NCBI RefSeq assembly: GCF_964188315.1
Contig: NC_135667.1
Span: forward strand, 7,936,001 to 8,000,000
Direction of reading: 5' to 3'
Length of the DNA: 64,000 nt
Origin: Podarcis muralis
Lineage: Eukaryota
Made by a program: the position numbers and the translations under genes. Position 1 is the stretch's first letter; each line of letters opens with the position of its first letter. The notes beneath the pieces were generated by a model that had not been told where the DNA came from, made no database searches, and saw nothing but the letters and a program-made list of their open reading frames with translations. Positions 378-51,937 of this stretch are shown here, piece by piece.

Positions 378-432
378 CTTCTTCTTTTCCAACAGCTGCT
401 TGGAGATGGCTTCTGTGTTCCACATGTTCCTT
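378..432 (-). CDS. SPATA31-like copy A, exon 2 (55 nt, KEHVEHRSHLQAAVGKEE); the next large exon is predicted beyond the left edge
   Basis: Acceptor tcctctcttcctag, donor AAG|GCAAGC (GC-type; the paralogue has GTAAGC). Phase 0 in, phase 1 out. Only two differences from copy B exon 2, both synonymous. Confidence 0.7.
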
Positions 433-1339: not shown

Positions 1340-1594
1340 CATCGGTGTGCCGGTCTCAGAGCGGAACCGACTGCCCAGCTGTTGCTCCAAAAAGTGGGGA
1401 TTCTCAGTGATCTCAGGTTCCACTGAAAAGGACAAGATGCTTCTCCATGCTTGGCCAACTCTCTTGCACCACACAAAGGAGCCACATAGGATCATTTGGA
1501 AGAGGCTGATGAACAGAGCCAGGACTAGAGTAGTGTACAAGTTGAAGTAGCAGTCCAAAGGGGAAAAGCGATTGATAAGGGAAATCAGTCCCAT
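1340..1594 (-). CDS. SPATA31/FAM75-like gene, copy A, coding exon 1 (85 codons, N-terminal hydrophobic/TM segment)
   Basis: ATG at 1594 in strong context (AAGATGG) with an upstream in-frame TAA at 1666-1664. Encodes MGLISLINRFSPLDCYFNLYTTLVLALFISLFQMILCGSFVW...GTPM and ends at a canonical donor ATG|GTGAGT (phase 0). Paralogous to 22029-22283. Confidence 0.75.
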
Positions 1595-4745: not shown

Positions 4746-5948
4746 TGGCAGTATTATCTATCCTCAAACAAAATGGGCTACAATTTAAATTTCATGCAAA
4801 GGAACAGTACTAAGATCCCAAACACCAAGAGATCTTTAAGTTTAATAAGCTATACATGAATTGCACAAACTACACCTGATTGAAAAGTATGTTCCAGAGT
4901 GGCTTCAAGGACTTTTGGATCATCTGTCAATTTTACCACTATTCATGAACTCAAATGACTTCTTGTGCATTATTTCCATGGGTCACAGAACACTAGTTGA
5001 GCCAAACCAGCACATCGTGGTTATTTCTGTGTGTCCCCCACCCCCTGCTAAGAAAAAGCATAGATGAAACCTACCCCTGAGCACATTGTGATCTTAATAG
5101 GGATTTAAGACAAGAGATAACATTTTCTTTTTTAGCTTGAGGGCCTAGTGGGCAATCTTCTGGGGTCCACATGCCTGTGGTGGGTAGGACAATGGATACA
5201 ACTCTTATATTTGTACAATAGGCTGCAATCATACAAGTCTCATAAAAGCCAGGGGTACCTCTCTCCATCCAGCCTACAAAGAGGTATCAGTACAGTTCAA
5301 TGGCACATTCCAACCAGGCAATGAACAAATGAACAAAAACCAGCTAAGAAGGTGAAGTAGGACCAGGGATTTGTGTGGCCATTTGTGTGGCCTGTGAAGA
5401 TTCCCAAGGGCCAGATCACCTCTCAATGGGTTTGTGCCACTAATAACTCTGCACCAGAGTACTAATAACTTCTTGTGAACCAATGAAGGTGAACACCAGG
5501 ACCAGCAGGCACATGGGCCAGCCCCAGTAGAAGATGGGTGACCACCCAGCTTAGACTTGAATGGAGTGAATATGCAGTTGCTCCCCTAGAGCTGCCTACA
5601 GTAGTTACCTTACAGTAGAGTGGTCATCTAAGGCAGGATTGGGGAACCTTTTTCATCACAATGGCTACATTCCCTTCTGGGGGACTATTAGTATTTGTAC
5701 TGTATTTGTTAGAAAATGTATTTTACAAAGAATAAATTGTACTGGGGAAAAGAAAACCAGACAAAAACACTTAAGGGGTGTGTGAAGCAGGGCCGGTGAG
5801 GGGCATGTGTGTGACCTGGTGAGGGTTGCAAGTGCCAGATAGAGGGTCTTAGCAGACTGCATTTGTCTCCATTCCCCACCCATCTTCTAAGGTGGCTATT
5901 ATATTTAAGTGCTGCAAACCCCCCAACACAGTGCTGCTAACATAGAGA

Positions 5949-5954
5949 TTTATT
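5949..5954 (-). terminator. Candidate polyadenylation signal (AATAAA) of the giant SPATA31-like gene
   Basis: tttatt on + strand, about 310 nt downstream of the TGA stop at 6264-6262. Confidence 0.5.
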
Positions 5955-6261
5955 GACAAAAACGTATTACATTACAAAACAATTTAAGAATGCTTCATAC
6001 ACGGTAAAAAAAGGTAAGTGATAGGTTTGCTGAGCCTTCAGCATCTAGACAACCATCAGTGGAAGGTGGAGCCTTGTGCTCTTTTCCCATCACCACCATT
6101 TGATATTCATGGTGCTGCGTTTTAAAAAATCCTTGTCATCAAGGTATCCTACACACTCCACCAGAGCAGCTTATCATTTTCTCTTGGCCTCTTTGTCAAG
6201 GGGACTAGATCTTGCACGTTGCTGATGCTCAGTTTTCAATCCTTAGTGCACACCTTGCCAC

Positions 6262-9200
6262 TCACTCAACTGCTGCTCCATCTTTGCTGCTTGTCCCGGT
6301 GCTTTCTGGACTTTTTAAATTTCTGCTTGACCTGCTGCTTGAACTCGGGTCCTTGCTGCTTGACCTGTTTCTTGACCGGCTGCTCAATCTCGGATTTCTA
6401 CTGCTTGAACTTGGGTCCTTGCTTCTTCCCCGGCTTCTTGACCTGCTGCTTGAATTTCGGCCCTTGCTGCTTCCCCGGCTTCTTGACCAGCTGCTGAATC
6501 TTACATTTCTGCTACTTGCCCTGCTCCTTGTCCGGCTGCTTGATCTTGGTTCCCTACTGCTTGACCTGCTTCTCGATCCACTGCTTGATTTTTTATCCCT
6601 GCTGCTTGCTCTGAGCTTTGACATTATGCTCTGCTTCCAGCTCCTGAAACTTATTCTCCCTTTTCTGGGTTTAGATTCATGATCCCATCGGACTGATCCC
6701 CTTTCTTTTTTCTCAGGGAGCCTTGTTTCACCAGCACCCCCACTCTGCTTCCTCTTGTACAACACGCTTTGAGTCATCTTCCTTTCACTTTTCTTCCTAA
6801 ATTTGGACTGGGCCAAATCCTTTCTCTCTCTCTGACTTTCTCCAGGGTGGTTTCCCATGCCGCTTGTTGCATGGCCAATGCCGGCGCCTCGTTTCTTTGA
6901 CTTCCCTTCTGAAATGACCCCCGGCCTTTCAGTATTCTGCATCCAGATATTCATCCCATCCCTCAGATGCATTTTTCTCTCCAGGATTTTACCAAGTATA
7001 GACAGTTTCCCATCTGTTTTCACAGTGTGTTTTGAAGATATGCCACCTACAGAGTGAGGGTGGGAGCCTTTTTGCACCGGCTGCTTGTCCATCCCATGTT
7101 CTAACCTGGGGGCCTCTTCCCCTCTTGTTGTCTTAGCTACCTGTTTGCTTTCATGTTTGGTTGATAACTCTTTTTCTCCAATAGTTTCTTTATGGGATGC
7201 CTTTCCTCTCCCACCCAAAATTTCTTCACCATTTCTGTCTCTTACTTCTCCCTCTCCATCTCTTATTTCTCCTTCTCCATCTCTTACTTCTCCTTCTCCT
7301 TCTCTTACTTCTCCTTCTCCTTCTCTTACTTCTCCTTCTCCATCTCTTACTTCTCCTTCTCTTACTTCTCCTTCTCCATCTCTTACTTCTCCTTCTCTTT
7401 CACCTCCTCCATCTCTTACTTCTTCTGCTTCTCCTCTTTCTTCCTCCTCATCCTTCCTCCCAGCTCCTTGGTGTTCCCCACCTCCAGGATCTATTGTGGA
7501 TGCTTCTCCACCAGCCTTTCCTTCTCCTTCCCTGTCATCCCCCAAGATCTCTGTCTGTTCAAAATCACGATTTTCCTCCCAGAAGGCCACTCTTTTGTGG
7601 GATACAGAGAGTGGCCTGGAGAGATCCAGAGCTTCAGTCATTTCATCTGCAACTGACTGAGGTGCACGGAGGTGTTCAAATTGTTCAGAAACTGCTTGCC
7701 TTGCCACATCAAACACCTTTGTTTTGCTTAGGCTGGCCCTTTCATCTGAGGTCTCTGAGGAAGGCACAACATCCTCTGGAGAAACTTGGGGTGCTCCTGC
7801 TGTCAGAGAATCTGCATATCTCAGGCTTCTGGGCTCTACCATGGGCATCTCCTCTGCATCTTCACTACTGACTCCTTCCTCCTTTCTCACACACGAGCTC
7901 TCCTTGCCTATTTCTTCGCCACCATCCCAGTCTCCGACTCTCTCCAGTTCACATTCTGTGCTGTACTCAGAAGATGAATAGGCACCACCTTCCTCCCTTT
8001 CTTTCCCCATATTATCACTTGTCTGTAGCAGGGAACCATCTGTGGGCTGCATTTGGAATTCAACTTCTGTGTTTGCAGAATCTTGATTTTGAGATAAAGG
8101 TGACACCTGCTGGTTGGATTGTTCTTGATCTTGGGAGTCTTCACTTGAGGTCTCCCTATTCTCAGAGACTTGGATACCTTGGTGCTCCATGGGGTCCTCA
8201 CTTTTGGGGGTGGGTGGGGGAGGTTTCAGGTTACAGCAAGGGGATTCAGAGGACCACCCTTTTAGCTGTCCGGGTGCTTGGCCCCCTTTGTCACTGCTGG
8301 TGGCTGTATCTTCAATAATTTGGTTGGTTATTTGCTTCCTTTCCTCACTGTCACAGCTTTGTTTGTCCCATTCTGCCTGGTGCTGTTGATCTGCCTGGCT
8401 ATAATGCACAGGGTCCACCACATGCTCATGGAAACATTGAGAGTCAAGGGTATGGGGTGGCGGTGTGGTGGGATCCAAGGCTTGCTGGGAGACAAGAGTG
8501 TTGTACTGTTGAGTGTCATCTGCCTTCAAAGGCCCAAAATATGCCTGGGAAAATTCATGTTCTGAGAGTGAAGCATCCTTCATACATTCACCTAAGGATG
8601 AACCAGAGACTTGGGATTCAATATTATGTGATATCTGAGAAGTGGCATCTGCCTCTGCCTCTTGTGAGAGGGAAGGATCTTTATTATCTCCTGAGGATGA
8701 AGAATGGATCTGGAGTTCGGTATTCAATGATGGCTGAGAAGAGGAGTCAGCCTTGCCTTCCTTTGAGAGGGAAGTATTCTTATCTCTGTCTCCTGAGGAT
8801 GAATCAGAGTCCTGGCATTCAATATTAGCTGATGTCTGAACAGAAAAATCCACCTCGGCTTCCTTTGAAATGGAAGAATCTTTTCTACTTTCTCCTGGGA
8901 ATGAAACAGAGTCCTGGGGCCCATTATTCTCTGATATCTGAGAAAAGGACCCTGCCTCTGTCTCCTTTCCATTTTCCTGGGAATTTTCTTGCTGCTCTTG
9001 CCTCCACCTTTGCTCTGCAACTAATTGTAATGATGAAGCTGAGCCTTTTGTGGATGTTGATGAATGACATGAGCAGGGACAGTTGAATATCTCACAAGAC
9101 TCCTCTGCCTTGCCAGGAATTTGTGGATACTGTGCAGCATGATGTAGATTCAGTGTAACTATCTGCAGTGCACTCACTTGCGGTGCTTCTCTTTCACCCT

Positions 9201-12200
9201 CTGAGCTGCTGCTTGTCCCTTGGATTACTGTGAAATGCTGAACTTTTGTAAGAGGATAGAGAGATCCACTATCCTTTTCGGCATCTGGCCAGGAAACCAT
9301 CCTATGCTGTATTTTCCAAAACAGCTCTGAGCTGTATGTGGGTTGATCTTCTGACCCTGAGCTGGCTTCCTTTTCTGCTCCTGTTTGAAAAGGAGTGTTT
9401 GGCACTTGGAGGGTCTGAGCACCAGAATAAGTCAAAGGCTCCTCCTTCTCCATTTCATCAGCTTCTGGGATAAAGTCCCTTGTTGACTTCTGAGCCAGGT
9501 TAGGGAGGTGCCACTGGTGCTCTATGTTGAGGTTCTTGGTGTGTTTTTCCAGGTGTTCTTTTGATCTTGAGTGTAAGAAATGTGAGTGCTGGGAAGAAAC
9601 AGGAACCTCTGTTGTCGTAGGCCATTCCTTGGCACCAGCTCTCCATTCATCAATAAAGTTATTTTGTCTCCTTCCAGCAGTGCTCACTCCCACTGAAGTT
9701 TGGGGGCTCTCCTGTGGCTCCAAGGGGGGTGGAGCAAATGCACGCACCGATTTCTGAATAATGGCTGGCAAGCCCCACTGATGCTGGATCTTCTTGTGCT
9801 GGATGTGGACTTCCAGAACATCTTGAGCACCATCAGCGAGGAAAGGCAACTCTGCCACACAGTCTATAAAATGGGTAATAGATGAGGTTCTTGCCAGAAG
9901 TCTCTCCTCCTCATTCTCCCCCAGAAGTTGGGTGTGAGAGTCTTGATAAAATGTAGAGTTGTGGGGATGAGTTTGAGGCCTGATTTCCTCAAACTGATGT
10001 GACACAGGAGGTAGAAATGCTCTAAGCATATTTTGAGCATGTTTTGGAAGCCCCCATCTATGCTTTGCAGTCATGCTCCTAACATGAGCATCTAGACACT
10101 CTGTTGTGTCTGGACTGAGGAATGAGAGAGTCGGAGTAATAATGTATACTTCCCCTCTGTCCCATGAAACTCCGTTGGCTATATTCTCTCCTTCCATGTA
10201 TGGTGGGTGCTTCTCTGATTCAATGAGAAATGGAGCAAAAGCATGCAGGGATTTCAACACAGAGGAAGGTAAGCCCCATGCATGATGGAGTTTCTTGTGC
10301 TGAATGTGTGATTCCAGAAGGTTCTGGGCCTCATCCGTGAGGAAAGGAAGAGTCACCTCAGGCAATAAGAAAGTAGTCGCTTGAGCCAATACAGGTGTAG
10401 CTGCTGCCTTTTGAACATAATTGAGCTTCCTCTCCAGTTTCTCTACTGCCATTTTTCTTACCTTGGCATCTTCTAGAAAGTCTTCCTTGTCATCTTCTGA
10501 ATGGGAATCAGCTTCAGGCTCTTGGGAGAATTTGCGATGAAAAGGTGTTAGAGACCTTGCTTCACCCAACTCAGATTGGGAAAATGCTCTGGGATTCCGA
10601 AATGCCCTCAGTGATTGTGAAACCTGTTCTGGAAGGTGCCACCTATGGTGTGTAGTCATACGCCTCACATGGGCATCCAGGTTCTCCTGTAACTCTTGGC
10701 TGAGGAACGTGAGACTCCTTGAAATAATATTGGCTTCTTCTTTCTCCCATGGGTATCTCATGGTCATGCTTTGCCTGTGTTTCTCTGTCTCAAGATGAAA
10801 TGGAGCAAAGGCATGCAAGGACTTCAGCACATTGGAGGGTAGGCCCCAAACATGGTGGAGTTTCTTGCGCAGGATGTGAAATTCAAGAAATTCCCAGGTC
10901 TCATTGGTTAAGAAACCAAGTTTCACTCCAGGCCACAAGAAAGCAGTTACATTCAAGTTCATAGTTGAGTCTGCTCCCTGTTTCAATTGGTTGAAGACCT
11001 CCATATTCCTTATTGTCCTTCTTTTGACCATGGAGTCTTTCATGTCTTCATTGTCACCTTCTGTTTCAGAGTAATCTCTAGCCACCTGGGAGGATTTGTA
11101 GTGAGAAGGAGAAAAATCCTGTGCATTCTCCAATTCCAATCCTAAAGCATGTCTGGGATGTAGAAATACTCCCAGTGATTGCTGAACCCGCATTGGAAGG
11201 CCCCATCTGTGCTTAGCCACCCTCCTCCTCTCATGAGCTTCCAGGCGATCTTTTGTGTCTGGACTTGGGAAGAAGGGATCCCAGACAATCTCTTTCACTT
11301 CTACCTTATCCCCTTGGCGTGCCTTAGTCATTCTCTTGCCTAAGCTTTCCACATGCGTCTGAGACCCATGGAGAAATGGGGCAAAGGCATGCATGGACTT
11401 CAGCACAGAGGAGGGTAGCCCCCATGTGTGCTGGAGTTTCTTCTGTCGGATATGGAATTCCAGAAGATCTTGCGCTTCATCTGTGAGGAAAGCAAGCTTT
11501 GCCCCAGGCCATAAGAAAGTAGTTTCTTCAAAGTTCACAGTTGTGGTTGCTCCCTGCTTTCCTTGTGGAAAGCCCCATCCTTTCTCTCCTGTTCTTCTGT
11601 TGCCCATTTCCTCCTCCACCAAGTCTTCCTTGTCCTCTTCTGAATGGGAATCAGCTTCAGGCTCTTGGGGAAATTTGCCATGAAAAGGTGTTAGAGACCT
11701 TGCTTCACCCAACTCACATTGGGGAAAGGGTCTGAGATGCCGAAATGCCCTCAGTGATTGTGAAACCTGTTCTGGAAGTTGCCACCTATGGTGTGTAGTC
11801 ATACGCCTCACATGGGCATCCAGGTTCTCCTGTAAGTCTTGGCTGAGGAACGTGAGACTCCTTGAAATAATATGGGCTTCTTCTTTCTCCCATGGGTATC
11901 TCATGGTCATGCTTTGCTTGTGTTTCTCTGTCTCAAGGTGAAATGGAGCAAAGCCATGCAAGGACTTCAGCACATTGGAGGGTAGGCCCCAAGCATGGTG
12001 GAGTTTCTTGCGCAGGATGTGAAATTCAAGAAATTCCCAGGTCTCATTGGTTAAGAAACCAAGTTTGACTCCAGGCCACAGGAAAGCAGTTACATTCAAG
12101 TTCATAGATGAGTCTGCTCCCTGTTTCAATTGGTTGAAGACCTCTATTTTCTCTGTTGTCCTTCTCTTGACTTTGAATTCTTTCATTTCTTCATTGTCAC

Positions 12201-15200
12201 CTTCTGTTTCAGAGGAATCTCTAGCCACCTGGGAGGATTTGTAGTGAGGAGAAAAATACTGTTCATTCTCCGATTCCAATCCTAAAGCATGTCTGGGATG
12301 TAGAAATACTCCCAGTGATTGCTGAACCCGCATTGGAAGGCCCCATCTGTGCTTAGCCACCCTCCTCCTCTCATGAGCTTCCAGGCGATCTTTGGTGTCT
12401 GGACTTGGGAAGAAGAGATCCCAAACAATCTCTTTCACTTCTACCTTATCCCATTGGTTTGCCTTAGTCATTCTCTTGCCTAAGCTTTCCACATGCGTCT
12501 GAGACCCATGGAGAAATGGGGCAAAGGCATGCATGGACTTCAACACAGAGGAGGGTAGGCCCCATGTGTGCTGGAGTTTCTTCTGTCGGATATGGAATTC
12601 CAGAAGATCTTGTGCTTCATCTGTGAGGAAGGCAAGCTTTGCCCCAGGCCATAAGAAAGTAGTTTCTTCAAAGTTCACAGCTGTGGTTGCTCCCTGCTTT
12701 CCTTGAGGGAAGCCCCATCCCTTCCCTGCTGTCCTTCTGTTGCCCATTTCCTCCTTCACCAAGTCCTCATTGTCATCTTCAGTCTGGGAATCAGCTGTAG
12801 GCACTTGGAAGAATTTGCCTAGGGAAGGCTGCACATTATCCTGACGAGATCCGAAAGGTTGTCTGGGAAGCAGAAATCCTCCCAGTGATTGCTGAACCCG
12901 CTTTGGAAGGCCCCATCTGTGCTGTACCACCCTCTTCCTCATGTGAGCTTCCAGGTGCTCTTTTGTGTTGGGACTCAGGAAGGAGAGACTTGGGATAACA
13001 ACTTGTACCTCCATCCAATTGCATTGCGTTGCCGTTGTCATGTTCCTTCTTGTGTGTTGCATCTGCTTCTGTATCTCAAGGGGGTATGGGCCAAAGGCCT
13101 TCAATGACTTCAACACAGAGGATGGTAGGCCCCATGCATGCTGGATCTTCTTATGCTGGATGTGGAATTCCAACAGGTCCTGGGTGACCCTTGTGAGAAA
13201 ATTTAGGTTCACCTCAAGGCTTGATAAAGCAGTTACTTTAAAGTTTGATTGTACAGTTACTCCCTCCTTCCCTTGGGGAAAAACCCATCCCTTTCCTGCT
13301 GCTCTTCTTCTGTTGTCCATTTCCTCCTCCACCAAGACTTCATTTTCATCTTCAGTCTGGGAATCAACAGTATGCTCTTGGAGAAATTTGCCATGAAAAG
13401 GTGTTAGAGACCTTGCTTCACCCAACTCAGATTGGGAAAATGCTCTGGGATTCCGAAATGCCCTCAGTGATTGTGAAACCTGTTCTGGAAGTTGCCACCT
13501 ATGGTGTGTAGTCATACGCCTCACATGGGCATCCAGGTTCTCCTGTAACTCTTGGCTGAGGAACGTGAGACTCCTTGAAATAATAGGGGCTTCTTCTATC
13601 TCCCATGGGTATCTCATGGTCATGCTTTGCTTGTGTTTCTCTGTCTCAAGGTGAAATGGAGCAAAGGCATGCAGGGACTTCAGCACATTGGAGGGTAGGC
13701 CCCAAGTATGGTGGAGTTTTTTGCGCAGGATGTGAAATTCGAGAATTTCACAGGTCTCATTGTTTAAGAAACCAAGTTTCACTCCAGGCGATAAGAAAGC
13801 AGTTACATTCAAGTTCATAGTTGAGTCTGCTCCCTGTTTCAATTGGTTGAAGACCTCCATTTTCTCTGTTGTCCTTCTCTTGACTTTGAATTCTTTCATG
13901 TCTTCATTGTCACCTTCTGTTTCAGAGGAATCTCTAGCCACCTGGGAGGATTTGTAGTGAGGAGAAAAATACTGTGCATTCTCCAATTCCAATCCTAAAG
14001 CATGTCTGGGATGTAGAAATACTCCGAGTGATTGCTGAACCCTCATCGGAAGGCCCCATCTGTGCTTAACCACCCTCCTCCTCTCATGAGCTTCCAGGCG
14101 ATCTATGGTGTCTGGACTTGGGAAGAAGAGATCCCAGACAATCTCTTTCACTTCTACCTTAACCCATTGGTTTGCCTTAGTCATTCTCTTGTCTAAGCTT
14201 TGCTCATGCGGGCAAAGCTTAGACAAGAGAAATGGGGCAAAGGCATGCATGGACTTCAACACAGAGGAGGGTAGGCCCCATGTGTGCTGGAGTTTCTTCT
14301 GTCGGATATGGAATTCCAGAAGATCTTGTGCTTCATCTGTGAGGAAGGCTAGCTTTGCCCCAGGCCATAAGAAAGTAGTTTCTTCAAAGTTCACAGCTGT
14401 GGTTGCTCCCTGCTTTCCTTGAGGGAAGCCCCATCCCTTCCCTGCTGTCCTTCTGTTGCCCATTTCCTCCTTCACCAAGTCTTCCTTGTCATCTTCAGTT
14501 TGGGAATCAGCTGTAGGGACTTGGAAGAATTTGCTGGGGTAAGGCCGCACATTGTCCTGCCCTGATCCGAAAGGTTGTCTGTGACGGAGAAGTCCTCCCA
14601 GTGATTGCTGAACCCGTTTTGGAAGGCCCCACCTGTGCTGTATCACCCTCTTCCTCATGTGAGCTTCCAGGTGCTCTTTTGTGTTGGGACTCAGGAAGGA
14701 GAGACTTGGGATAATTACTTGTACCTGCATCCCATTGCATTGGATTGCCGTCGTCATGTTCCTTCCTGTGTGTTGCATCTGTATCTCAAGGGGGTATGGG
14801 CCAAAGGCCTTCAATGACCTCAACACAGAGGATGGTAGGCCCCATGCATGCTGGATCTTCTTATGCTGGATGTGGAATTCCAACAGGTCCTGGGTGACCC
14901 TTGTGAGAAAATTTAGGTTCACCTCAAGGCTTAAGAAAGCAGTTACTTTAAAGTTTGATGGCACAGTTCCTGCCCTCTCTTGCTTTCCTTTTACCCTTCT
15001 CTTGGCTTCTTCTGATGAGTGTTCATTGTCATCGTCAGTCTGGGAACCATTAGTATGCCCTTGGGAAGATTTGTATTGACGAGATAACGGATCCAGTTCA
15101 GATTGAGGAAGTGATCTGGGCCGTTGAAATGCCCTCAGTGATTCCTGTACCCGCTTTGGTATTTCCCATCTGTGCTTTGTGGTTATATTCCTCACGTGAG

Positions 15201-18200
15201 CCTCTAGTCTCTCCTTCATATCCGAGCTGATGAAAGCAAGATTACTGATTATCGTTCTCACTTCTACCCAATCCCAGGGGTGAATATTTGTTATGTTTTC
15301 TCCCCGATGATTCTCTGGATCAGGGGGAAATAGGGCAAAGGCACATAAGGACTTCAGGACAGTGGAGGGAAGACCCCACATGTGCTGGATTTTCTTCTTT
15401 CCAATGTGGAATTCCAGAAGATTCCAAGCTTCCTCTGTGAGCAAAGGTGGCTTCATCTCAGATGATTCAAACGTAGTCAGTTCCACACCTGTGCCTGTGG
15501 TTGCCACTCCATGTCCTTGGTGGATAGTAGCTTTTGGATGACCCCTGGCTCCTGCTTTGGGTGTGAGTTGCTTCAAAGGCTCTCTTCCCTCAGAAAGAGT
15601 AGGGATTTCATCTTGCTCGTAGGACTTACGATGATCTTCTTTGAAATGGGACGCAAGTTGAGTGGGAGCAATTGCCCTCAGAGAATCCTGAATCAGTTTG
15701 GGAAGTCCCCACTGGTGCTCCATGGCCCAGCTCCTCACGTGGGCTTCTATGCCATTCTTGACATCTGGACTTACAACACGCAGGGCCTTTTGAGGGGGGA
15801 TGGTCTCTAACACAGATTGTGGTACATGGGCAGTCGCTTTCTCTTGATATCCCAGTTTCTCAACAGTGACATGTGTTGATGCGCCTGCTTTTTTACTCCT
15901 CTGTAGCTCAGGTGGAAGAGGGACAAAGGCATGCAAAGATTTCTGCACTAGAGATGGCAGCCCCCACTCATGCTGGAGTCTTTTGCGCTGTATGTGAAGT
16001 TCCAAAAGATCGCAGGCTTCCTTTGTAAGAAATGTTGGCACTGGCTCCTGAAATACTTCCGTCAATTGGAATTTAGCCTCCATATTTTTTTTCTTGAGAT
16101 GGTCTTCCAAAAGATTCATATTTGAAGCAGGGGTCACTGATTTCCCTGAAGAGGGTTTGTGTGCAGTGTCTGCAAACATCGGCTGTGGGGATCTAGTCAT
16201 AAGCAACTCCCTTGCTTCATTCTGGAATATTGGGGGTTCCAGCTCCTGGACCCTAATCTTCACTTGGCTGATTTGGGATGAGGAACATCTTTCCTGGAAC
16301 ACTGTAGCCAAAGGTTCCAAGTGCATGCTGGGCAACTCCCCCAAGAAAGTGAAATGTTCCCTTGTTGAAGATGAGGTGACAACATTTGGAATATCTCTCA
16401 ACTGCATCTCCCTGTGCTTCTTGGCCAAGTGGTGGTTCATCTTGTCCAAACTATGGGGCTTCAGCATAGAAAGAACTTGAGCTGACTGTGGGGAGGCAGG
16501 CATCAACCCAAATGTTTTTCTGTTGCTTACTTCTTGGTGTACAGTACTCAATCCTGGGTGCTTGTATGTTATCCAATAGCAAGGGCAGTAGAAGTAGCGG
16601 TCTTCCACTGCTGCCCTGGTTATGGCATCTTTCCCATTCAAGATTTCACTCTGTTGACTAGGTTGGTGCTCTGGAAACTCATGCCTGATGTTCAGCTCCC
16701 CCTTATCCACTGCTTCACCCTCCACCAAGGGCAGAAATGTGCTTCTGGGCTTCACTTGGCTATAAAGAGGGGCAAACTTCTGGAGGGAGTCTTCAAGTGT
16801 GATCTTGAAGCTTCCCATGGGTTGGAGATCAGATTCTGTGGACCTTCTCCTGAGGCTAGGGTGATCTGTAGAGGCAGCTGATGATTCAGAAAAAGCTCCC
16901 TCAGGGACTTCTCCTGCCTCCATATCCTGGTGTGGGCTGACCATTTGCTGTGCCCTGTAAGCCTTGGGTCCATGTGTGAAGATGTTCTCACCCACAAATG
17001 TTGCCTGCCTTGCCTCTACCAGCTCTTCTCTGGCTACTGGGATGGGAGAGGAGAATCTGCCCAGAGAGTCACAGCTTTTATTTTGGTACTCTGTAATTTG
17101 TGGTTCCAAGGGACCTGTCCCAAACGCAGGGCGGAAAAGCTTGATAGATTCCAAAACCCTCTTAGGCAACTTCCATTGTCTCTGTAGCTTCATCCTTTGA
17201 ATGTGGAAATCCAACTGACTGTAGGTGCTTTGGGGAAGGAATGACGGTTTCTGTAGTAGAATGTAGACATGGGCTTTCGCCCTTTGGAGACTTGGCAGTG
17301 GGGGAGCCTGTGATTTGAAGCCATGCAAGGATTTCTGAATAAGACTAGGCAAGCCCCATTCATGTTGTAGCTTCTTTTTTCTAATGTGCAGTTCCAGATT
17401 CTCTCTGACCTGAGCATAGAGAAACTCTGTCCGCACTTCTAAGAACTCAACAGCAACTTCTCTAGCTCTAGGAAACGTGGGCAGCAGTTTGGGCTTCATT
17501 GCACTCATGGCCAAGGTTGGGGAAACGTCCGGCCATTTTTCATCCAAGTGGAATATCTTATTCTCTGTTGCTTCAGACTGAAGTGTGGGGTACATCAAAA
17601 GCTGACTTGGCATTGTCCTCCTCCCTATCCTAGTTCCATCCTGTTTCCCTGCAACAGTCACCATCTCTGGGGAAAGTAGCCTGAGGGACTCAAGGACCCT
17701 TGGGGGTAAGTGCCATCGGTGAAGCATGATTCTTTTCAGCAGATTCTGCTCTAGTTCTTGGATGATGGCATCGCTAAGGAAGGAGAGCTCAGCCAGAAGA
17801 ACACTCACCTCCATGTGCTGCAATGTCCGGTGCTGATGCAATTGGGGGACAACGGGGAAAACAGAATGGAGAGATCTCTGGACAAGACTTGGCAACCCCC
17901 AATCATGCTGCAACCTCTTTTTTCTCACGTGCCATTCCAGATCCTCCCAAGTCCCCTGCTCAATGAATGGGATCTCTTGTATCAGTGTGGGCTCGTCCCA
18001 TGGGTGCTGCACCTTCTTTTTAAGCACATGGGAATCCAAAGACTGCTCCTCATTAGCAGGAAGAAAACTTGTCCTTGCTTGGACAAATGCAGCAGTGTGC
18101 TGCGACCGAAGTAGCATCTCATGTCTGGCCTCAAAGGACTTCTTCTCAGTTATAGTCTGGGGGGTTGCTTTGGAAGGAGGGGGAGATTTGAGGGCTGTTT

Positions 18201-19415
18201 CTCTGGCTGTGGATTCCAAATGTAGAACATGCCTATGAAGTTTCCCTTCCCTCTCACCCTTGACGACTCCTCCTCGGCCTCCTTTCCTGTGTGCAGATGA
18301 TGCTATATCTGTGGTGAGGGGATAATCTAGCTTCATATGCTTGAGGGCCTCTTGGACTTGCTTTGGCAACACCCGGCATTGCATGTGAATCATCTTTTTC
18401 ATGTGTTTCTCTAGTGTCCTCCTCTTTGCCCCACTCATGAAAGGAAGAAGCCGAGGCCTCATCAACACAGTATGCTCCCTCTTTGGACGGTACGGGCAAG
18501 TGAAATCCATACCAAGAGGCAAAAAGGCCCTGAGTGACCTGAGGACGACTGATGGAAGACCCAATTTGTGTTGAATACTTTTCACAACCAAATGCCACTC
18601 CAAGGTCTTTCTCACAGTCTTAGCTACAAAGGGAGTGTCCTCAGTAGCAAATTCAACCCTAGGAGATTTGATATTTGCTTGGGAGATCACAGGTAAAGAA
18701 CTGGGGAAATGCCTTGTTCCTTTATGGTGGAATCTCATGCCCTGGTGGTTCTTCCTCTCACTCAGAGAGGACCCTTCATTTTTCTTATGCCTCAAAGGCA
18801 TGTGGCTCTTCTTGCTGAAATTTGATAGCTCGGACAGGTCAGAAGAGGGACTGTAATCTTCCCAACTATTGTAAGACAGCTCTGATGATGTGCTAGAAGA
18901 GAGGCAAAAGGGATCGCTCATTTCCCCACTGCTGTCCTCAGAGCTGTCATAACATTTATTTATACTAAACATGGAATGGCTGTCAGAACAGGTGGGACTT
19001 ATGTCATTCTCCCTGGAGATGGGAACATCTTGCTGAGCATAATGGAGTGGTTTCTCCTTCTGCCTCTTGCCTTTGGGAATGTGTTGCTCCTTTCTGGATG
19101 AAGGGGTTATTTCTGGGCCCAATTCTGGATGGCCACAGTTTGTGGCAGGTTTACTGCTGCTCCATGGAAAAATTGTGTCATCTCTTTGAGCAGAAATGGC
19201 TGGTAGGCTGGAGCTCCCCACATAAGAGGCAATGGGAAGTGATGGCATTTGCAAAGCAGAAAGCCCAGGTTTTGATCCATAGACACGCAGCACTTCCTCA
19301 GCCTCCTTGGCTGCCCTGTCACATATGGCGCAGGTCACGTTGTCACATAGCAATCTGCGTATGGAGGAATGGCAACTGCCTCCATTTTGTGGGTCTGTCT
19401 CCTGGTGTTTGGTAC
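6262..19415 (-). CDS. Giant terminal exon (13,154 nt, 4,383 aa + stop) of a SPATA31/FAM75/FAM205-family (spermatogenesis-associated 31-like) protein, copy B
   Basis: Uninterrupted ORF. Acceptor ttcatttgtcttacag|GT at 19416/19415 in phase 1, matching exon 2. Starts with SIRRLLCDNVTCAICDRAAKEAEEVL (resembles the conserved RxLLCxxxxCxxC motif of SPATA31 N-termini). About 30 copies of LE-x-H-(I/V)-xx-K/R-xx-QH-x-WGLP-xx-V-xx-S, typical of FAM75 domains. Three-exon layout (TM exon, tiny exon, huge exon) fits the family. Family assignment is by motif recognition. Confidence 0.8.
6265..6620 (-). repeat. Ser/Arg-rich imperfect tandem repeat encoding the protein C-terminus (RSSS/RSRS)
   Basis: Recurring ctgctgcttgaa/ctgcttgacc units on + strand. 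Protein SSSRSRSRGRSKDPSSSSRNPRLSSRSR. Confidence 0.85.
7238..7424 (-). repeat. 21-bp coding minisatellite (EVRDGEG / EVREGEG heptapeptide, about 8-9 units)
   Basis: Unit tctcttacttctccttctcca repeated, with one 15-bp variant; frame preserved. Confidence 0.9.
10390..14956 (-). repeat. In-exon higher-order tandem repeat, eight ~570-bp (190-aa) monomers in order A-B-C-A-B-C-B-C, with diverged monomers on both sides (to about 9700 and 15460)
   Basis: Anchor ga(g/t)ggtaggcccc at 14831, 14267, 13691, 13121, 12551, 11978, 11411, 10835. Spacings 564, 576, 570, 570, 573, 567, 576, all multiples of 3. Confidence 0.9.
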
Positions 19416-21081: not shown

Positions 21082-21115
21082 CCAGGATGAGCTGGTTCCT
21101 GTCTCAATGGCTTAC

Positions 21116-21170
21116 CTTCTTCTTTTCCAACAGCTGCTTGGAGATGACTTCTGTGTTCCACGTGTTCCTT
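21116..21170 (-). CDS. SPATA31-like copy B, exon 2 (55 nt)
   Basis: cttcctag acceptor, AAG|GTAAGC donor. Phase-1 end G joins GT at 19415 to give Gly, in frame with the giant ORF. Confidence 0.75.
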
Positions 21171-21855: not shown

Positions 21856-22028
21856 ATTATTTGATTACATGGCTGTAACCTGCCCTGACTTTGCACTGAA
21901 GGAAAGGTAGGAAATCTCTTAAATAAATTTGTAAGTACATATTGCTGTTGTAAGTTGAGAAAACCAAATGTGGTGGGGGGGGGGCTGAGTCAAATTCAGA
22001 CATGAACAAAGGGGATACTGAAACTCAC

Positions 22029-22283
22029 CATCGGTGTGCCAGTCTCAGCGGGGAACCAACTGCCCAGCTGTTCCTCCAGGGAGTGGGGATTCTCAGTGAC
22101 TTCAGGTTCAACTGAAAAGGACAAGATGCTTCTCTATGCTTGGTCAAGTCTCTTGTACTATGCAAAGGTGCTACATTGGATCATTTGGAAGAGGCTGATG
22201 AATAGAGCCAGGGCTAGAGTAGTGTACAAGTTGAAGTAGCAGTCCAAAAGGGGAAAGTGATTGATGAGGGAAATCAGCTCCAT
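22029..22283 (-). pseudogene. SPATA31-like copy B, exon 1, with two in-frame TAG stops (codons 42 and 50); the last codon is an in-frame ATG
   Basis: Same length (255 nt) and donor (ATG|GTGAGT) as copy A. TAG at 22160-22158 and 22136-22134 where copy A has TGG. Confidence 0.8.
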
Positions 22284-22813
22284 CTTTGTGAAACTGACCT
22301 GAATGCAGTCTTTGCACCCAAGAGATGGTATGTATCCCCCAGGCAGTGGCAGTTAGCAGTGGTTTAGAGCAGCATTCCAAAGAATATCACAAAGAACTAA
22401 CAAAAGAACCTTGGGAACACCCTGGGTTTTCTCCAGCCATGGATGCTGCTGCTGCCTCCTTCTTCACTGTCCTTCAGAACATGCTTTTTTTCTTTGTTAT
22501 TCTGGAAGCCACAGTCATACACCTCCATACAAAAACACATGAGTCTATGGTTTTTTGGTTTTTTTAAGAACTAGATAGACACTACCAGAGAGATGAACAA
22601 TGTTTGCATCTAAAGTTAGTTCTACTCAGAGTAGACCCACTGAAATCAATAAACCTAAGTTAGTCATATCCATTAATATCAACAGCTCTGCGTGGATTAG
22701 TATTGGACACAACCCAAAAACTTGTAATCTTAGCTTAACATTTATTTACTCAGGATAGGAAAGACTGTGTGTAGTGCAGTTGCATACTGTATATTGTAAA
22801 ATGCTGTGGTAAA

Positions 22814-23824: not shown

Positions 23825-26800
23825 TTATCTCCTCATTAGCTGTTCTTTGCTGTTCAGCTCAGGCCTCAGCAAAATAATGTAACATTTTGGGGAAAAAATA
23901 CAACCCAACAAACCAGCGCTGGAGGCCAAGATGGAGAAGATCTCCACAGCCACCATATATTTCCCCTTAGTGCTCAGGTAGGTTGGAACAAACGACAACC
24001 AAACACTGCAAAACATCAACATGCTGAAGGTGATGAACTTGGCTTCATTAAAAGTGTCTGGCAGCTTCCTAGCCAGGAATGCCACAGTGAAGCTGATGAT
24101 GGCTAGAAGTCCCATGTAGCCCAGGACAAGATAAAACATGGTGACAGAGCCTTCATTACATTTTGATATGATCTCTTGAGTCAGTGACTGCGTGTCCAAA
24201 TCTGGAAAGGAAGGAGTGGTAGACAACCAAATGGCACAAATACCAACTTGAATGTGGGAGCAGGAAAACACAATGGCGTTGGTCAATCTTTTTCCTACCC
24301 ACTTCCTCATGCTGGACCCTGGCCTGGTGGCCATGAAAGCAACAACCACTGTCATGGTTTTGGCCAACACACAAGAAACAGCCACTGAGAAAATGATGCC
24401 AAAAGTGGGTTGTCTGAGAAGGCAGGTCACTTTCCCAGGTTGGCCAAGGAAGAGCAAAGAAGAGAGGAAGCAGAGCAGAAGGGATATGAGGAGAGCATAG
24501 GTGAGGTCCCTATTGTTGGCTTTGACTATGGGGGTATCTCTGTGCTTAATAAAAGTTATTAGTGCCAAAGCTGTGATCAGGGAAAAAGAAACAGTAACTG
24601 ACGTTAAACTGATCCCTAAAGGTTCTTCATAAGAAAGATAGCAGATTGTTTTGGGGATGCAGTGATCTTGGTTGTTGCTTGGATACTGATAATCTGGGCA
24701 GTTCACACAGTTAATCATGTCTGGAAAAAGAAGAAGAAGAAAGGCTCATTTCAATAGAAATTCACATCTGATGAAGAGTACATTTTGGCTTCTGAGTTTG
24801 TTACTATAGGTACCGTATTTATCACTGCTATTTTACTGTATTTTATTGTAGTGTTCTGATGTAATGGTTTCTTCTTTTTGCATGGTTGTTTTACTGATTC
24901 TGGGTTGTCAGCTACCCTATGTTCCAGAAGAGAGGAATGGTGGAATACAAAAATATTTAAGACATAAATAAAATAAACTTTATTTGTGGAAGCAAGATGG
25001 AAGCTGCTGCTCACATACATTATCATCTAACTGCTGCTTGTATATATAAGATTGCTATATTCCCGTTGAGCTCTTTTCATTTGGGGGCTTTTCTTTGATT
25101 TTTTAATAAAAAGAGCCCAACTTGCCATACGTCCGGGTCTTCCGATTAAGGTTGTGTGCAGTGTTGTCTGCTGAACACCTTCGTTATGTTTTGAAGGTTC
25201 CTGCAGAAGACTGCTTACATTATGAGTAGTGCCTTCCAGAAGCCTTTGGTCTACACTTCCCATCAGTCTGGCTAGAATAGCCAATGTTAGGAATGATTGG
25301 AGCCTAGCATTCCTGTGCTTATTACATATCTTGCCCGTGAATTAAGTTGTCTATTACCCCATGTCTCGTTTCTTCATTATTGCTGCAGGGGCAAATGATT
25401 ATTTGCTGCTTGAACGAAAATTAAGTGAGGGGATAATTGCAATACATCACCTACCCTTCTGGTTTGAAATCTTCCCTTCTGGACATGGAACACAATCATA
25501 GCAGCAAAATTTATCCTTTTCCCTCTTTTTCTTCTGATAACCAGGGCGGCAAGAGTTACTACACACAGAAAGGGGTGGCACCTTTCAGTACACAGCATTG
25601 GAGTTTAGGGTAGAAGAAAGAAGAAATGTTTTGTTGCACATAAGCTGACGTACAAAATAAGTAAATAAGCAAACTGTTGACATGGAATAATGAACTTAAA
25701 TGGAACATTACACATTCATGCATACACCCGCCCATCTCCTGCTAATGCTTTCCAGAATATATTGTTTTTGCCATCTATTGCTTGGCTGACATAGGGGCAT
25801 AGGAAGTTGCTAAATACTGAGTCAAACCCTTGGTTCCTCCAGCTTTGTATTGTTCACAGTGACAGGCAACAGCTCTCCAAGATTTCAGACAGGGACATCT
25901 CCTGGCCCTACCTGGAATTGCAAGCAATTTAAACTGGGACCTGCATGCAAAGCAGATTCTCTATTACCAAACTATGGCTAGGGATGCAATAAGGCAGTCA
26001 TTTCCATTCCTTTCTATCCTATCTCACAATCGGAACTATTTCCATTCCACTGCAGTTTGGTTTCCACAAAACACCATGTTATTTGTCACACTGTCCACTA
26101 TTTAATGTAATTCACATAATTATTGACGCTAGTTACGAATTTAACATAAGTAAACACTTTTAATTCCACACCATTAATTTCAGTGCAAGGCACACACAAT
26201 CTAAATGGAGTGGGGCAGAAGTAATCAATCACATATTGCTTCCGAGTAGAAAACAAAACAAAACAAATATTATAAAAGCCTGGATTATTTTCCATTTGGA
26301 TGTAGGATAAATTAGTCCAGATTGGTTATTTCCACTTCTGTTTTAATTTTCATCAGTATTTTCTTACAACTCTAGCTGAGGGCCCTTCTCCAAAATGTGG
26401 GTACCAGAGAAGTTATTTTAATAACTTAATCCAGTGTCTCATTCCATAGGAAGAGGGGTGTCTATTGGTGTCTCGTTTTCTTTTGTAAAAAAAAACAAAA
26501 AAAACTGGTTCAAAATCCCCTATCAAAGTTTATTTTTATAGAGGATATTATTTTTTATTTCACTTGAACAGAATATTGCACATTTCCCACTGTTAGGCAC
26601 TTTAAGGTTACAGCTCTCTTTGTTTTTCTTAATGCAATAGGTGGTATTGTCTTTATTATAGAGACAGATCATTCATCGTCAACTGATACAGAAGAGAGAA
26701 TTCTTAGGTCTTAAATCAATATCCTAGCACCCATACTTGGTTAAATACACTGGGCCACACAATTAAATCATCATCAAGGATTAGTTCTTCTCCTTCAGGA

Positions 26801-29800
26801 GCTCTGGGCTCCACACTTCCGACTTTAACTCTCTGGAAGGAGTTGTTTGGGAAAGTGGCTATGCTCATGATGTCAAATCCACCTTCCATTTCTCTTTTGT
26901 CATTAAAGGACACTGTTTCTTGAGCTGAGTTGTTGAATGTTATGTCTTGAAGAATCAGGTGGAGCTAGTTGAAAGAGAAAAAGAAACAAGGGGAGAGCAA
27001 AATAATAGACACGTATCGCTGGAAATTCATGACATTGAATTCATGAGTTCATGAAAATTCCCAATGAATTGAATGGGTCTGGATAGGCGTGCCTAAACAA
27101 AATTGTTTTAAGCAGGTGCCATAGTTAGCAAAGTGATGGTACCTGCCAAATGTTATGTTATGTCCTGATAGGGTCTCACTTCTTTTACAACCGCAGTTTC
27201 CCAGTGAAAAGCAAGAGATGCCCTACATACAGTGCATTGAAGTAACCTAATCTTGAAGTAACCAATGCCTGAACAATTGTGGTGAAGCTCTCCTGGTCTA
27301 GGCACAGTCTTAGCTGATGCACCAGTTACAGCTGGTAAAAGGTGCTTCTACCCACTGAGGTATCTGGGTCTCCAGAGACAAAGCTGGATCCAGACACTCA
27401 TCACCTCTGCCTGCATACCTGCTCATTCGGGGGGATTGTAAACCCATCAAGGGCAGGCAATCGACCAATTTCCCATAGAGGGTAGCCTAGGGCTGCCAGA
27501 TGCCGGCACAGACATCACTTAAAAGGGCAGTGCGTTTGGAGAAGGGAAGAGAGCCATTCGCAGCCACGCCTACATTGGGGAAGTGCTGGGGCGTGGGCGG
27601 GGCAGTGTGGGGCTCTCCTCTTCTCTTATGCTCGCTCTGTGCATCATGTTTTTCATAGCAAATCATTCTAGAACTTCATTTTTCTTGGAGCTTTTGCCCA
27701 CCACAAAAAAACTCAACAAGCGTAACAAAATAACCACCTTAACAACTTTTCTGTCTGGATTTTCAATTTTGGAAATATGGAAACTGGTAGCCACTCACCC
27801 ACATTGCATCCTTCTTATGTTATTTTCCCATCCCACCACAGGGCTCTCATGACCTCTCCTTATCCATGTCATGGAGAAATAAAGTTCAGTGTCATCAGCA
27901 TACTGATAGCATCTTGCCTCCAATCTCAATACCATTGAGGATAAAACAGTGCCCCATGCCAACCCCCAGCTTAAATGCCTGGGCCCCACAAAACACTCAT
28001 GCAATTCTACTCTCTAGATAGGACCAGTAACCAAATGCCCCCAGTTCCCATTCCATGTAGCTGGCCCTGGTCAATGGTATCAAAAGCTGCAGAAAGCTCA
28101 AGCAACAGGAGCAAAGTCACATTCCCCTTGTCCCGTCTTCCATAAAGGTCACCCAACAGGATAACTCAGTTTGGCAAACACCTTCTCTTGTCATGCAGCA
28201 AGACCTAGCCTGAAAATGAAGCTATTTTTTTCAGTGAGGGATGCTCAAAAGTTACGGCTTCCCTTCTCCAAGCCCCAAGAAAAGGAGAAAATGTGAACCC
28301 ACAAATTTCCATCAATGTCTTGGTGTGTCTAACATAATTTTACCATTAGGAAAAAGGCATATTGTATTAGCTTTTTCATGGCAAGTAAAAACACAATTAT
28401 ATAGTGTAGACATTACCTGCCATGGGTGGTTTGCAACTCTTTCAGCCTCCACAGCTGCTCTGAGTTTGGGTGTAGATGAGTCCATGGCATGCAGTGCATG
28501 TGCAGCAGCATAGACAGCATTATAGATGCTATAGCTGTGACCAGTCATGCACATTTCAAAAAGAGGCGCAGGAAGGCTCTCCAGTCTTGCCTCTCCAGTA
28601 CATGGTTCATTGACCTCTTTTGGACAATGAAATGAGCAGTCAAAGACTTGCTCCCATATATCCTTGATAAAACCATCTCCTTCTGCCCAGCAAGGCTCTA
28701 TAGTCTGAAGGAATGTCTTGAATGCTGGTGGTTCATGTGAATGAATTGTGAATGAAATAGCCCCTTGGAACACTTGCAGATCTGAGCCTCTTTGAAGGCT
28801 AGTTAATGCAAAATCTATCTGGGCTGTCAGAATCCACACCTTTTCGTGAGATGTGTCATTATTACGTTCAGGATTTCCCAGAAGAATAAAATAGCTCAGC
28901 CACATAATGGACAGTGTTTCTCCATAGAGAACAAATGTGTTGACTTTGTTAAATGTGAAAGGTTTATAAATACTCTGGACCTGGTTGTTAATTTCAAACA
29001 TATCATTTAACCGGGCTTGTTGTGTAATCCTTTCTGTGAAAGCTGAACAGATTCCATGCTGGGAAAGCAATGGCTCCAGGGTCTGCAAGAAACGCTCTCC
29101 ACTCTCATCGTTGACAGTGAAGAACCCAACCCATGTCCATCTGAAATGCTGAAGTAAGCGGACAATCCCAATGTACTGGCGGGCTTCGTTGGGGACCATA
29201 TTGTAGAAGGAGTGGGACTGCATTGCATAACTCTCCTCTGGGGCAAATGAGCCATAAGTGAGCTGAAATAAAATGTAGCGATTTAAGAGATTTTTTTAGG
29301 AGGAATGCCTGAATGAATCTGCATATGAGGGCTTTCAGTCTGGGCAATGAGTATTTTTCCAGCTAAACCTGATATGAATTCAGAAAACCTGAATTTTAAA
29401 GACGTATTTTGTCTGAATTTTCTCAGCCTGTGAAAATGTAATATTTTTGAACTAGTCATTGGAAAGATATCTGGTAGAAATTATTGACTGTATATTACCC
29501 AGATATGTATTTTAATATGTAAATATATTTATAATAACTGATTTTATGCATACTTTGGTTTTTTATCAACTAACTTTTTAAATCATTAAATCTAATGTAT
29601 ATTTTATATAAACTGCATTGAGATATTTATGAGTAAGCATACAAACTGCATTAAATAAATATATGAATTTCATTACATAAATAAATATATTTTCCCATCC
29701 TGTTCTCTTCCTTGGGCTAAGTCCCATTTCACTTTTGAATATCAGGCAAATTAAGTGTAGCTTTCCTGCCTTTCTGAACAACAAAAACCACTTCCAGAAT

Positions 29801-36584: not shown

Positions 36585-39459
36585 ATGCTAGAGAGGGTGT
36601 TTGCTGTAAAGATGGTGGGTCTACATGTGTTGTTGCTGCTGCTTCAGCCTCTCAAACAATGTAAAGCAGATACAAGAAAGTGCCACATGAATGATCCCCT
36701 CCCTGTTCCACATGAGTGGTACCAGCCCGGGAGCCTCATCATTGGTGGGATAACTTCTCACATCTCTTACCATTTCCATGAACTACTCTTCAATATACTT
36801 CCTAATCATGAGCTGTTCGAGGTTCCAAAGTAAGAATTCACCTCCCCCCTTAATCTGCTTCATCGGAGCTTGTTGCTCATACAAGTGATAGGATTTGATC
36901 TGATTTTGCTTTTACTTTTATATACCATCTTCCTATGGTACAAGCTGGGAAAAAACAAAATATAGAAGGAAAGTCGCACACCTCATAACAATCTGATCCA
37001 AAACAAATTAGTGATAGAAAAGATCACTTTAAAGTAAAGTTATATCAAATAAAGTAATATTCAACGATCCATACGGAATATGATAGTACATAATAAAACA
37101 AACTTTCCAAATATCAGTAAATAATAGTTTCATAGAAATCCACTCTCAATAAATACAATAAATCATTACAAAACCTGTTATCAATTTTTTTAAAAAAGAA
37201 ATGCACAAAATACTGCAATAAAAAGATCAGCTTTGGGTACATGGTCATGTATGTATGTATTTCTTCTTTTTAGGCTCCTTAGAGAGAGAGAGGAAAAGCA
37301 ATGTATTACAATGATGTGTGCTTCAAACAACGGCTTCTTCAGAACTATATCCAGTGCTATTTTTCCTAGTAAAAGAGGTGCCAGAACTCACATTGAACAC
37401 CTACCTAAGAGGTGCTGGAACTGAGTTCTGGTTGAAAAAATGTCCCCAGGATTAAATTTCTGAAGGAAACTCCTGGACTGGAAAGCTTAGGACTCACTGT
37501 TGGTTCAAGGCAGGAAAACCTTTGTCAGTGTTATGATGCTTTACATATGTTATTTTGTCTGTAAAGGAAGAGTTTTACTATCTCAGGAACAGCAGTAACA
37601 GGGTACTTTCAGTAGCTATGCGGTATCATCATAATCACCATGACTGATGTCCCAGAGGCAAGCAATTTGGTTATAGACAGGATGGAGCAGAATTGTTCTA
37701 AAGAGTTTGGCTGCCTTAAGTGCTTCTTTGCTGAAAGAGCACTCAATCTCTCTCTGCAGTGTGGTGCTAAAATTCTACCAGCACATCCTGGCCTTGGTGT
37801 TTGCCGTAAATGAGATCAACGAGAATCCCAGCATCTTGCCCAATGTCACCCTTGGGTTCCACATCTATGACAGCTACTACGACACAAGGATGACTTATCG
37901 GACCACTATGGGTCTGCTCTTCAAATTCAGAAGATTTGTCCCCAGTTACAAATGCAACACCCAGAAAAACCTCATAGCTGTCATTGGGGGACTTGGTTCT
38001 GATGTCTCCTTCCATATGGCAGAACTCTTAAGCCTATACAAGTATCCACAGGTAGGATTTATCCATGGATGAAGGGGGGGTAGTCACTAAGTTCATTCTT
38101 CTCCTGGAATGCTGAGAGTAATTTTGAGGGTCAGAATAAGCAAAGGAATGGATGAGAGAAAATCAAAATCTTCCCTAATGCTTAAGTTCCCCTGAAGCTT
38201 AGTGGTGCCATTTCCCAAGTGTGTAGCAGCTGCAATATCCTTAAAAAAAAGAAAGAAAAAGAAAGAAATGGAAATGAACTGTGACTTCATTTTAAAATGA
38301 ACTATGACTTCATTTTAAATGAGAGGTGCTAGTCTTCAGAACACCTCCTTTACCAGTTACTAAATGTCACATTTCCCAAGTCTACATTTCAGAGACCTTT
38401 AATACAATTTTGGCCTGCTCCCAAAATTGTGAAGGAGTTTTTCCACAGCTCTGATAAATATTCCTGTTTTGCACAGGGTGACAGGCTCAGATGCTCCTCT
38501 TAAAATATTTCTGTTTTTCCCTTCAGCTCACATACGGTTCATTCACCTCAGAGCAGAGTCATACAACACAGTTGCCTTCCTTTTACCACATGGTCCCAAG
38601 TGAAGCGAACCAGTACATTGGGATCATTAGCTTGCTGAAGCATTTTGGTTGGACCTGGATTGGGCTCTTTGCTGTGGACAATGACAGTGGAGAACATTTC
38701 ACACAGGTCCTGGAGCCATTGCTTTTTCAGAATGGAATCTGTTCAGCCTTCACACAAATGATTCCAAAACAAAACAATGCACTGAATCTCAATGCAGTTA
38801 ACATATTAGCCTCTCTTATTTATCTAGCTTTCTCAGAGAGCAAAGCCACTACCTTTGTCATCTATGGAGATTCTACGACCATTCTATGGGTGAATACATA
38901 TGTGCTCATAGGAGTTCCTAGCTACAATGAAAGAACATCACTTGGAAAGGTGTGGGTTATGACAGCCCAGCTGGATTTTACATTAACAGGCCTTCAGAAT
39001 GGATGGGATTTTCAATTGTTTGAAGGTGCCCTGTCCTTTACAATTCACTCTGACGAGATTCAAGGATTCAAGGAATTTCTTCAGATCGCAAAACCTGGCT
39101 GGAATCAAGAAGATGGCTTTCTCAAGGACTTCTGGGAGCAAGCATTTGACTGTTCATTTCCAGACCCCCAGAATCTGATAGAGGTTGATGGAACTTGTAC
39201 TGGAGAGGAGAGGTTGGAGAATCTTCCTGCATCTATATTTGAAATGTATATGACTGGCCACAGCTACAGTATCTATAATGCCGTCTATGCTGTGGCACAT
39301 GCTTTGCATGCCATAGGGTCCTCTAGATACAAACACAGTCCAATAATGAGTGGCAAAAGTCTTCAAGATCTCCAGCCCTGGAAGGTAGTGTATTCATAAT
39401 GAAATAATCTCATTTACATAAAGAGAATATAAAAAATAATGCATCTTCCAACTTTATTC

Positions 39460-51800: not shown

Positions 51801-51937
51801 TGGTGGCTGTGGAGATTTTCTCCATCTTGGCCTCCAGTGCTGGGTTATTGGTTTGCATTTTTTCTCCTAAATGCTACATCATAGTACTGAGGCCTGAGCT
51901 GAACAACAGGGAGCAACTAAGAAAGCGAAATAATTAA
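45881..51937 (+). CDS. V2R gene 3, intact, 879 aa
   Basis: Exons 45881-46110, 47818-48109 (292), 48345-49205 (861), 50050-50277 (228), 50656-50782 (127), 51036-51937 (902). GT-AG, total 2640 nt; FNEAK and PKCY intact. Confidence 0.93.

Follow-up and report, generated by a model that had tools for sequence, protein, structure and literature searches.

A stretch of 64,000 nucleotides of the Podarcis muralis genome (contig NC_135667.1, positions 7,936,001 to 8,000,000; referred to below as the window) carries on its minus strand a gene, copy B, whose first exon is interrupted by two in-frame stop codons while its second exon and a third exon of 13 kb are undamaged. The locus therefore raises the question whether copy B is a pseudogene or a gene that still makes its protein, and if the latter, where translation of this protein begins. 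Copy B consists of three exons, and their splice sites are all intact. Exon 1 (255 nt) begins with an ATG and, as had been pointed out in the initial annotation, also ends with one, the splice donor GTGAGT following directly. A second gene of the same kind, copy A, starts 4.7 kb downstream of the stop codon of copy B and continues past the left edge of the window. Beyond this edge the third exon of copy A was read in locus L001 (GCA_964188315.1, OZ076966.1), where its frame continues without a stop for at least 1,042 codons. The relevant parts of the two genes are listed below; coordinates are those of the window.

22283..22029, minus strand: exon 1 of copy B, the ancestral N-terminal hydrophobic anchor exon, closed by two TAG codons
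22158..22160, minus strand: first of the two in-frame TAG codons, at codon 42, where copy A has TGG; also in P. raffonei
22134..22136, minus strand: second of these TAG codons, at codon 50, where copy A has TGG and a P. lilfordi paralogue Trp; also in P. raffonei
22029..22031, minus strand: terminal ATG, last codon of exon 1; here RefSeq begins the CDS of the P. raffonei orthologue, and a product of 4,403 aa is proposed to start
22023..22028, minus strand: donor of exon 1, GTGAGT, preserved in the two copies of each species
22300..22361 (copy A 1600-1661), minus strand: conserved upstream block of 62 nt, shared without a difference by the two copies and close to the ancestral ATG; possibly a core promoter or a leader
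21116..21170, minus strand: exon 2 of copy B, 18 codons plus 1 nt (55 nt in all); its acceptor is AG, its donor GT
6262..19415, minus strand: exon 3 of copy B, a frame of 4,383 codons closed by a stop; contains 15 FAM75 (PF14650) stretches
1340..1594, minus strand: exon 1 of copy A, intact in both species, with hydrophobic residues 23-41
378..432, minus strand: exon 2 of copy A, with a GC donor in both species

Some minor structural differences between the copies were also seen. The donor of copy A exon 2 is GCAAGC (372-377) in P. muralis as well as in P. raffonei, whereas copy B has a canonical GT there (21110-21115). Copy B carries an 11-nt insertion at 22284-22299, in the interval that separates the ancestral ATG from the conserved block, and this insertion is found in P. 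raffonei too. Copy A appears to be much shorter, encoding ~2,550 aa.

Exon 3 of copy B matched the Pfam family PF14650 (FAM75) in 15 stretches with a score of 451 bits (E 4.7e-135; the cut-off of this family is 24 bits). No Pfam match was obtained with copy A exon 1 or with either open piece of copy B exon 1, the latter being searched separately. Copy B is a SPATA31/FAM75-family gene, one of two adjacent giant members of this family of sperm proteins. It shares with the family a conserved Cys-rich motif, located near the N-terminus of exon 3, and the gene structure, in which small 5' exons are followed by a single giant exon. Giant homologues of 2,400-5,100 aa were found in geckos, skinks, snakes, turtles, sharks and coelacanth. 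Most reptile homologues possess a hydrophobic N-terminal segment 80-100 residues ahead of the Cys motif, and so does copy A, in which the Kyte-Doolittle mean over 19 residues reaches 2.39 at residues 23-41. Copy B deviates from this norm, as its hydrophobic segment is out of the reading frame and separated from the main ORF by the two TAG codons. The closest relative in the protein database was LOC128400584 of P. raffonei (96% protein identity); protein word searches spanning 770-7,670 aa detected no orthologue in Lacerta or Zootoca. A word search made with the first 300 residues of exon 3 and aimed at short spliced ORFs in public RNA assemblies gave no hit, a blank that carries no information.

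The two copies are old paralogues and far from near-identical: dS between them is ~0.23, their non-coding DNA differs by 13.8%, and exon 3 contains large in-frame indels. The hand count of the initial annotation, 29 differences in the 255 nt of exon 1, was reproduced, together with the excess of G>A over A>G (G>A 10, A>G 2, T>C 7, C>T 3, transversions 7). The same was true of the two differences in exon 2, both synonymous, and of the uninterrupted 4,383 codons of exon 3. It had also been noticed that six of the G>A changes, including both TGG>TAG, are crowded in codons 38-50. The count was correct, but the clustering was not significant: the densest 43-nt window holds 10 differences, which is equalled in 26% of random placements (scan statistic p=0.26), and this density exceeds that of the introns by a factor of only 1.7 (p=0.08).

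A single burst of cytidine-deaminase mutation had been considered as the event that killed exon 1 through clustered G>A changes. The ratio of G>A to A>G, 10:2 in exon 1 and 24:28 in the flanking non-coding DNA, goes in the direction predicted by such a burst (Fisher p=0.026, uncorrected). However, the strand asymmetry between G>A and C>T was weak (p=0.09, uncorrected), and the G>A changes occurred in mixed contexts (GG, GC and GT). With the clustering and density values given above, the burst is left without statistical support, and we consider it rather improbable.

The age of the stops was assessed by comparing P. muralis with one other species, its sister P. raffonei, the two being represented by independent assemblies. 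The P. raffonei locus (L002) contains the same tandem gene pair. Exon 1 of copy A is intact in both species, and both TAG codons are present at the same positions in the P. raffonei orthologue of copy B. Since the two stops are common to two species, they must be old, and the possibility that they are assembly errors or rare alleles was ruled out. Judged from synonymous divergence, they arose after the A/B duplication (dS ~0.23) and before the split of P. muralis and P. raffonei (dS ~0.05-0.07). Exon 1 of the P. raffonei copy B carries in addition a 1-bp deletion near codon 12, which, being located in short runs of C and T, may be an error of assembly.

It had been argued that a gene dead for so long would have broken its giant exon, and that the downstream part of copy B is thus probably still translated. 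The comparison with P. raffonei strongly supported this argument. Exon 3 of P. raffonei is likewise a single open frame (4,356 codons, against 4,383 in P. muralis). The exon 3 proteins of the two species are 94.5% identical and are separated by eight indels, all eight in frame, whereas only 30% of the 63 indels found in the flanking introns and intergenic DNA (~10 kb of alignment) are multiples of three. Given the neutral divergence of 4-5% that was observed, exon 3 would be expected to have acquired 21-31 stop-creating substitutions since the split, and it has none; the probability that the frame stayed open by chance is 1e-9 to 1e-14.

Rates of substitution pointed in the same direction. By Nei-Gojobori counting (no likelihood model was applied) dN/dS between the P. 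muralis and P. raffonei copy B genes was 0.52 for the whole of exon 3, with a synonymous excess of p=3e-9; alignment within the 570-nt tandem repeats of this exon may be imperfect and could distort the values for its middle part. For the 577 N-terminal codons that copy B shares with copy A the ratio was 0.26, and the same 577 columns of copy A gave the higher value of 0.63. Codons 1-337 of copy B exon 3 gave 0.27 (p=0.002). The three differences between the species in copy B exon 2 are all synonymous (p=0.011, a test made on just three substitutions). When exon 2 was combined with the 55 codons preceding the first internal Met, five synonymous and two non-synonymous substitutions were counted (p=0.0086). 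The open frame of exon 3 and dN/dS values below 1 since the split indicate that copy B is alive and its protein still made. As far as sequence comparison can tell, exons 2 and 3 have been under purifying selection ever since exon 1 was closed.

These data also bear on the reading of copy B as a pseudogene whose giant exon is open merely through recency or through gene conversion from copy A. The two stops in exon 1 are what a pseudogene might show, and the high protein identity of exon 3B residues ~680-926 to the copy A orthologue of P. lilfordi is a hint of local conversion. Recency is contradicted by the stops, which are older than the species split, and the chance that both ORFs stayed open neutrally is at most 1e-9 from the stops alone. 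Because copies A and B differ by a dS of 0.23 and by large in-frame indels across the N-terminal 600-1,000 codons, conversion from copy A cannot have kept the N-terminal part of copy B open. Recent introgression from P. muralis into the P. raffonei locus is opposed by the 5% divergence. In view of the missing stops (none against 21-31 expected), the eight in-frame indels and the dN/dS range of 0.26-0.52 (p=3e-9 for the whole exon), the pseudogene reading was rejected as extremely improbable. The region mentioned, residues ~680-926 of exon 3B (roughly 17375..16635), is ~90% identical to the P. lilfordi protein (P0047), the sequence upstream of it ~55-75%; it may be an A/B gene-conversion tract.

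If copy B is translated, the closed exon 1 requires another start or a way through the two stops. The terminal ATG is the sole in-frame ATG between the second TAG and exon 2 and early exon 3, and in both species it is the first AUG in any frame once the upstream ORFs have ended. Both RefSeq isoforms of P. raffonei begin with the Met of this codon and continue with the residues of exon 2. The synonymous excess in exon 2 and the first 55 codons indicates that translation starts at or upstream of ATG 22031-22029. Among the mechanisms put forward in the initial annotation, initiation at this ATG, which would give a 4,403-aa product without the transmembrane segment, is thus the one best supported, by the RefSeq start in P. 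raffonei and by the coding-type evolution of exon 2. Our main reading, to which we assign a probability of roughly 0.7, is that copy B is a living gene, that its exon 1 was closed by two Trp-to-amber mutations, and that translation most likely starts at ATG 22031-22029 to yield an anchor-less product.

The two P. raffonei isoforms, X1 and X2, differ solely by 11 residues in a low-complexity repeat of Gly, Glu, Val, Arg and Asp (~residue 4036, P0044). The difference is probably an alignment artefact and not true alternative splicing.

The NCBI model of the P. muralis gene (LOC144325216, 3,668 aa) is different. It starts at Met338 of exon 3 (L001 10001-22141, corresponding to window 18402..6262) and treats 378 residues (two repeat units, 1,134 nt) as part of an intron. 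The late start and this intron both have the look of annotation artefacts when the sequences of the two species are compared. The dN/dS of 0.27 for codons 1-337 indicates that the codons upstream of Met338 are translated.

The sequence around the possible start sites was also inspected. The terminal ATG is in a weak context, with C at -3, whereas the ancestral AUG at the beginning of exon 1 is in a strong one, with A at -3 and G at +4. The upstream ORF that begins at the ancestral AUG is 41 codons long in P. muralis, where it ends 126 nt ahead of the terminal ATG with no AUG between, and 22 codons long in P. raffonei. Since a weak AUG is located behind a strong one and a 41-codon ORF, initiation at the terminal ATG is predicted to be inefficient. 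Of the upstream block, 58 nt are invariant across copies A and B of both species, against a background A/B difference of 13.8%.

This arrangement, as well as the Met338 start of the NCBI model, could be taken to mean that copy B is alive but has another 5' end: a promoter or first exon that has escaped notice, initiation at Met56 or at another Met further down in exon 3, or initiation at a non-AUG codon. Starts within exon 3 fit poorly with the constraint on codons 1-337 (p=0.002) and with the synonymous excess in exon 2 and the 55 codons that follow (p=0.0086). Use of a different first exon is difficult to reconcile with the conserved exon 1 donor and upstream block. In addition, a scan of 1.5 kb of upstream sequence and of intron 1 in both species gave no phase-0 first exon that has an ATG and a good donor, so that the unseen alternative first exon proposed earlier has no candidate nearby. 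We regard another 5' end as unlikely, with an appreciable residual chance.

The way through the stops would be recoding of the two UAG codons, either by A-to-I editing to UIG, read as Trp, or by readthrough, in which case P. muralis would still make the anchored full-length protein. Both UAG codons are derived from UGG, and editing would give back the ancestral Trp at both; moreover, exon 1B of P. muralis has no other disruption of the frame. In this respect copy B resembles the amber/W site of hepatitis delta virus edited by ADAR, since its UAG codons would read Trp if the A were edited. The resemblance does not go further. Predicted RNA folding around the stops was no better than that of shuffled sequence (MFE z-score +0.53), and within 3 kb there was no inverted repeat covering 22134-22160, so that over this span copy B is without a supporting duplex. 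Two independent high-efficiency edits would be needed. Furthermore, the frameshift in P. raffonei could not be mended by editing, yet exon 3 of this species is equally constrained. With initiation at the terminal ATG, editing is also unneeded. The editing proposed in the initial annotation is therefore disfavoured, and recoding of any kind seems most improbable.

The sequence of events proposed for copy B is as follows. Two Trp-to-amber mutations shut the anchor exon at some time between the A/B duplication and the species split, and translation would since have started at the exon-terminal ATG 22031-22029. The predicted product has 1 + 18 + 1 + 4,383 = 4,403 residues and lacks the hydrophobic segment, which would leave the large family domain free, presumably in soluble form, rather than tethered. 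Exon 1 is now probably a 5' leader with a 41-codon upstream ORF. Should the old promoter still be in use, this leader would be transcribed from the dead part of exon 1, and the main ORF would be reached by re-initiation after the upstream ORF, probably at reduced efficiency. In copy A the hydrophobic segment is followed by basic residues. According to the positive-inside rule the basic flank of a membrane segment faces the cytoplasm, so the large domain should face the cytoplasm as well. Loss of the anchor would then release this domain from the membrane while leaving its compartment unchanged.

A variant of this scheme would have the P. muralis mRNA bicistronic, coding for a hydrophobic micropeptide of 41 residues and a re-initiated anchor-less protein of 4,403 residues, or would have partial UAG recoding provide some anchored protein. 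If the bicistronic reading were true, nonsense mutation would have split one ancestral membrane protein into a membrane micropeptide and a soluble giant. The peptide of the upstream ORF is not conserved in P. raffonei, where the ORF is frameshifted and has 22 codons, which makes a conserved micropeptide unlikely. We give this variant very little weight.

The Met that probably serves as the start of copy B seems to be older than the loss of the anchor in Podarcis, since a Met near the end of exon 1 is found in Sceloporus and also in Phrynosoma. In the RefSeq model of Sceloporus undulatus LOC121920879 (L003 ~5800-6012) the initial Met is located three codons ahead of the donor of exon 1. Further upstream the frame is open to an ATG and encodes the hydrophobic segment, so this model seems to under-call an intact anchor exon.

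The divergence of the two copies is of an ordinary, known kind. It is comparable to the relocalisation of paralogues by loss of an N-terminal anchor or targeting sequence: in a tandem pair copy A keeps the anchor, copy B lost it by mutations in the first coding exon, the rest of copy B is under purifying selection, and a pre-existing downstream Met was available as a new start. In copy B the change of location is predicted from the missing segment. The loss in copy B was by two nonsense mutations and not by loss of an exon or a change of promoter, and the old AUG with its 41-codon upstream ORF is still there. Re-initiation after upstream ORFs is established for vertebrate mRNAs such as ATF4. 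Copy B is similar to these mRNAs in that the upstream AUG is strong and the ORF that it opens stops 126 nt short of the main AUG, with no other AUG between. It differs from them in that the upstream ORF is what is left of a coding exon and its peptide is not conserved in P. raffonei; any regulatory role of this ORF is putative.

Copy B thus offers a datable natural case in which the likely location of a duplicate changed through nonsense loss of its anchor, a Met at the end of the exon probably taking over as the start. For SPATA31 biology the two copies would represent a natural tethered/untethered pair with which the role of the anchor can be addressed. The comparison also corrects the P. 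muralis gene model, whose start appears to be 337 codons too far downstream and in which 378 residues seem to be wrongly removed as an intron. More generally, stops in a first exon are no ground for calling a pseudogene when a 13-kb exon is open across species.

The neighbours of copy B in the window are genes of type-2 vomeronasal receptors, recognized by long open exons:

23825-24718, 28312-29223, 38491-39399, 41885-42811, 48408-49241, 50996-51937 and 59561-60463, on both strands: long open exons of type-2 vomeronasal receptors (7tm_3 and ANF_receptor domains)

The window contains a run of 170 N at 61183-61352. Between 36 and 63 kb of the window, blocks of ~10-11 kb are present three times.
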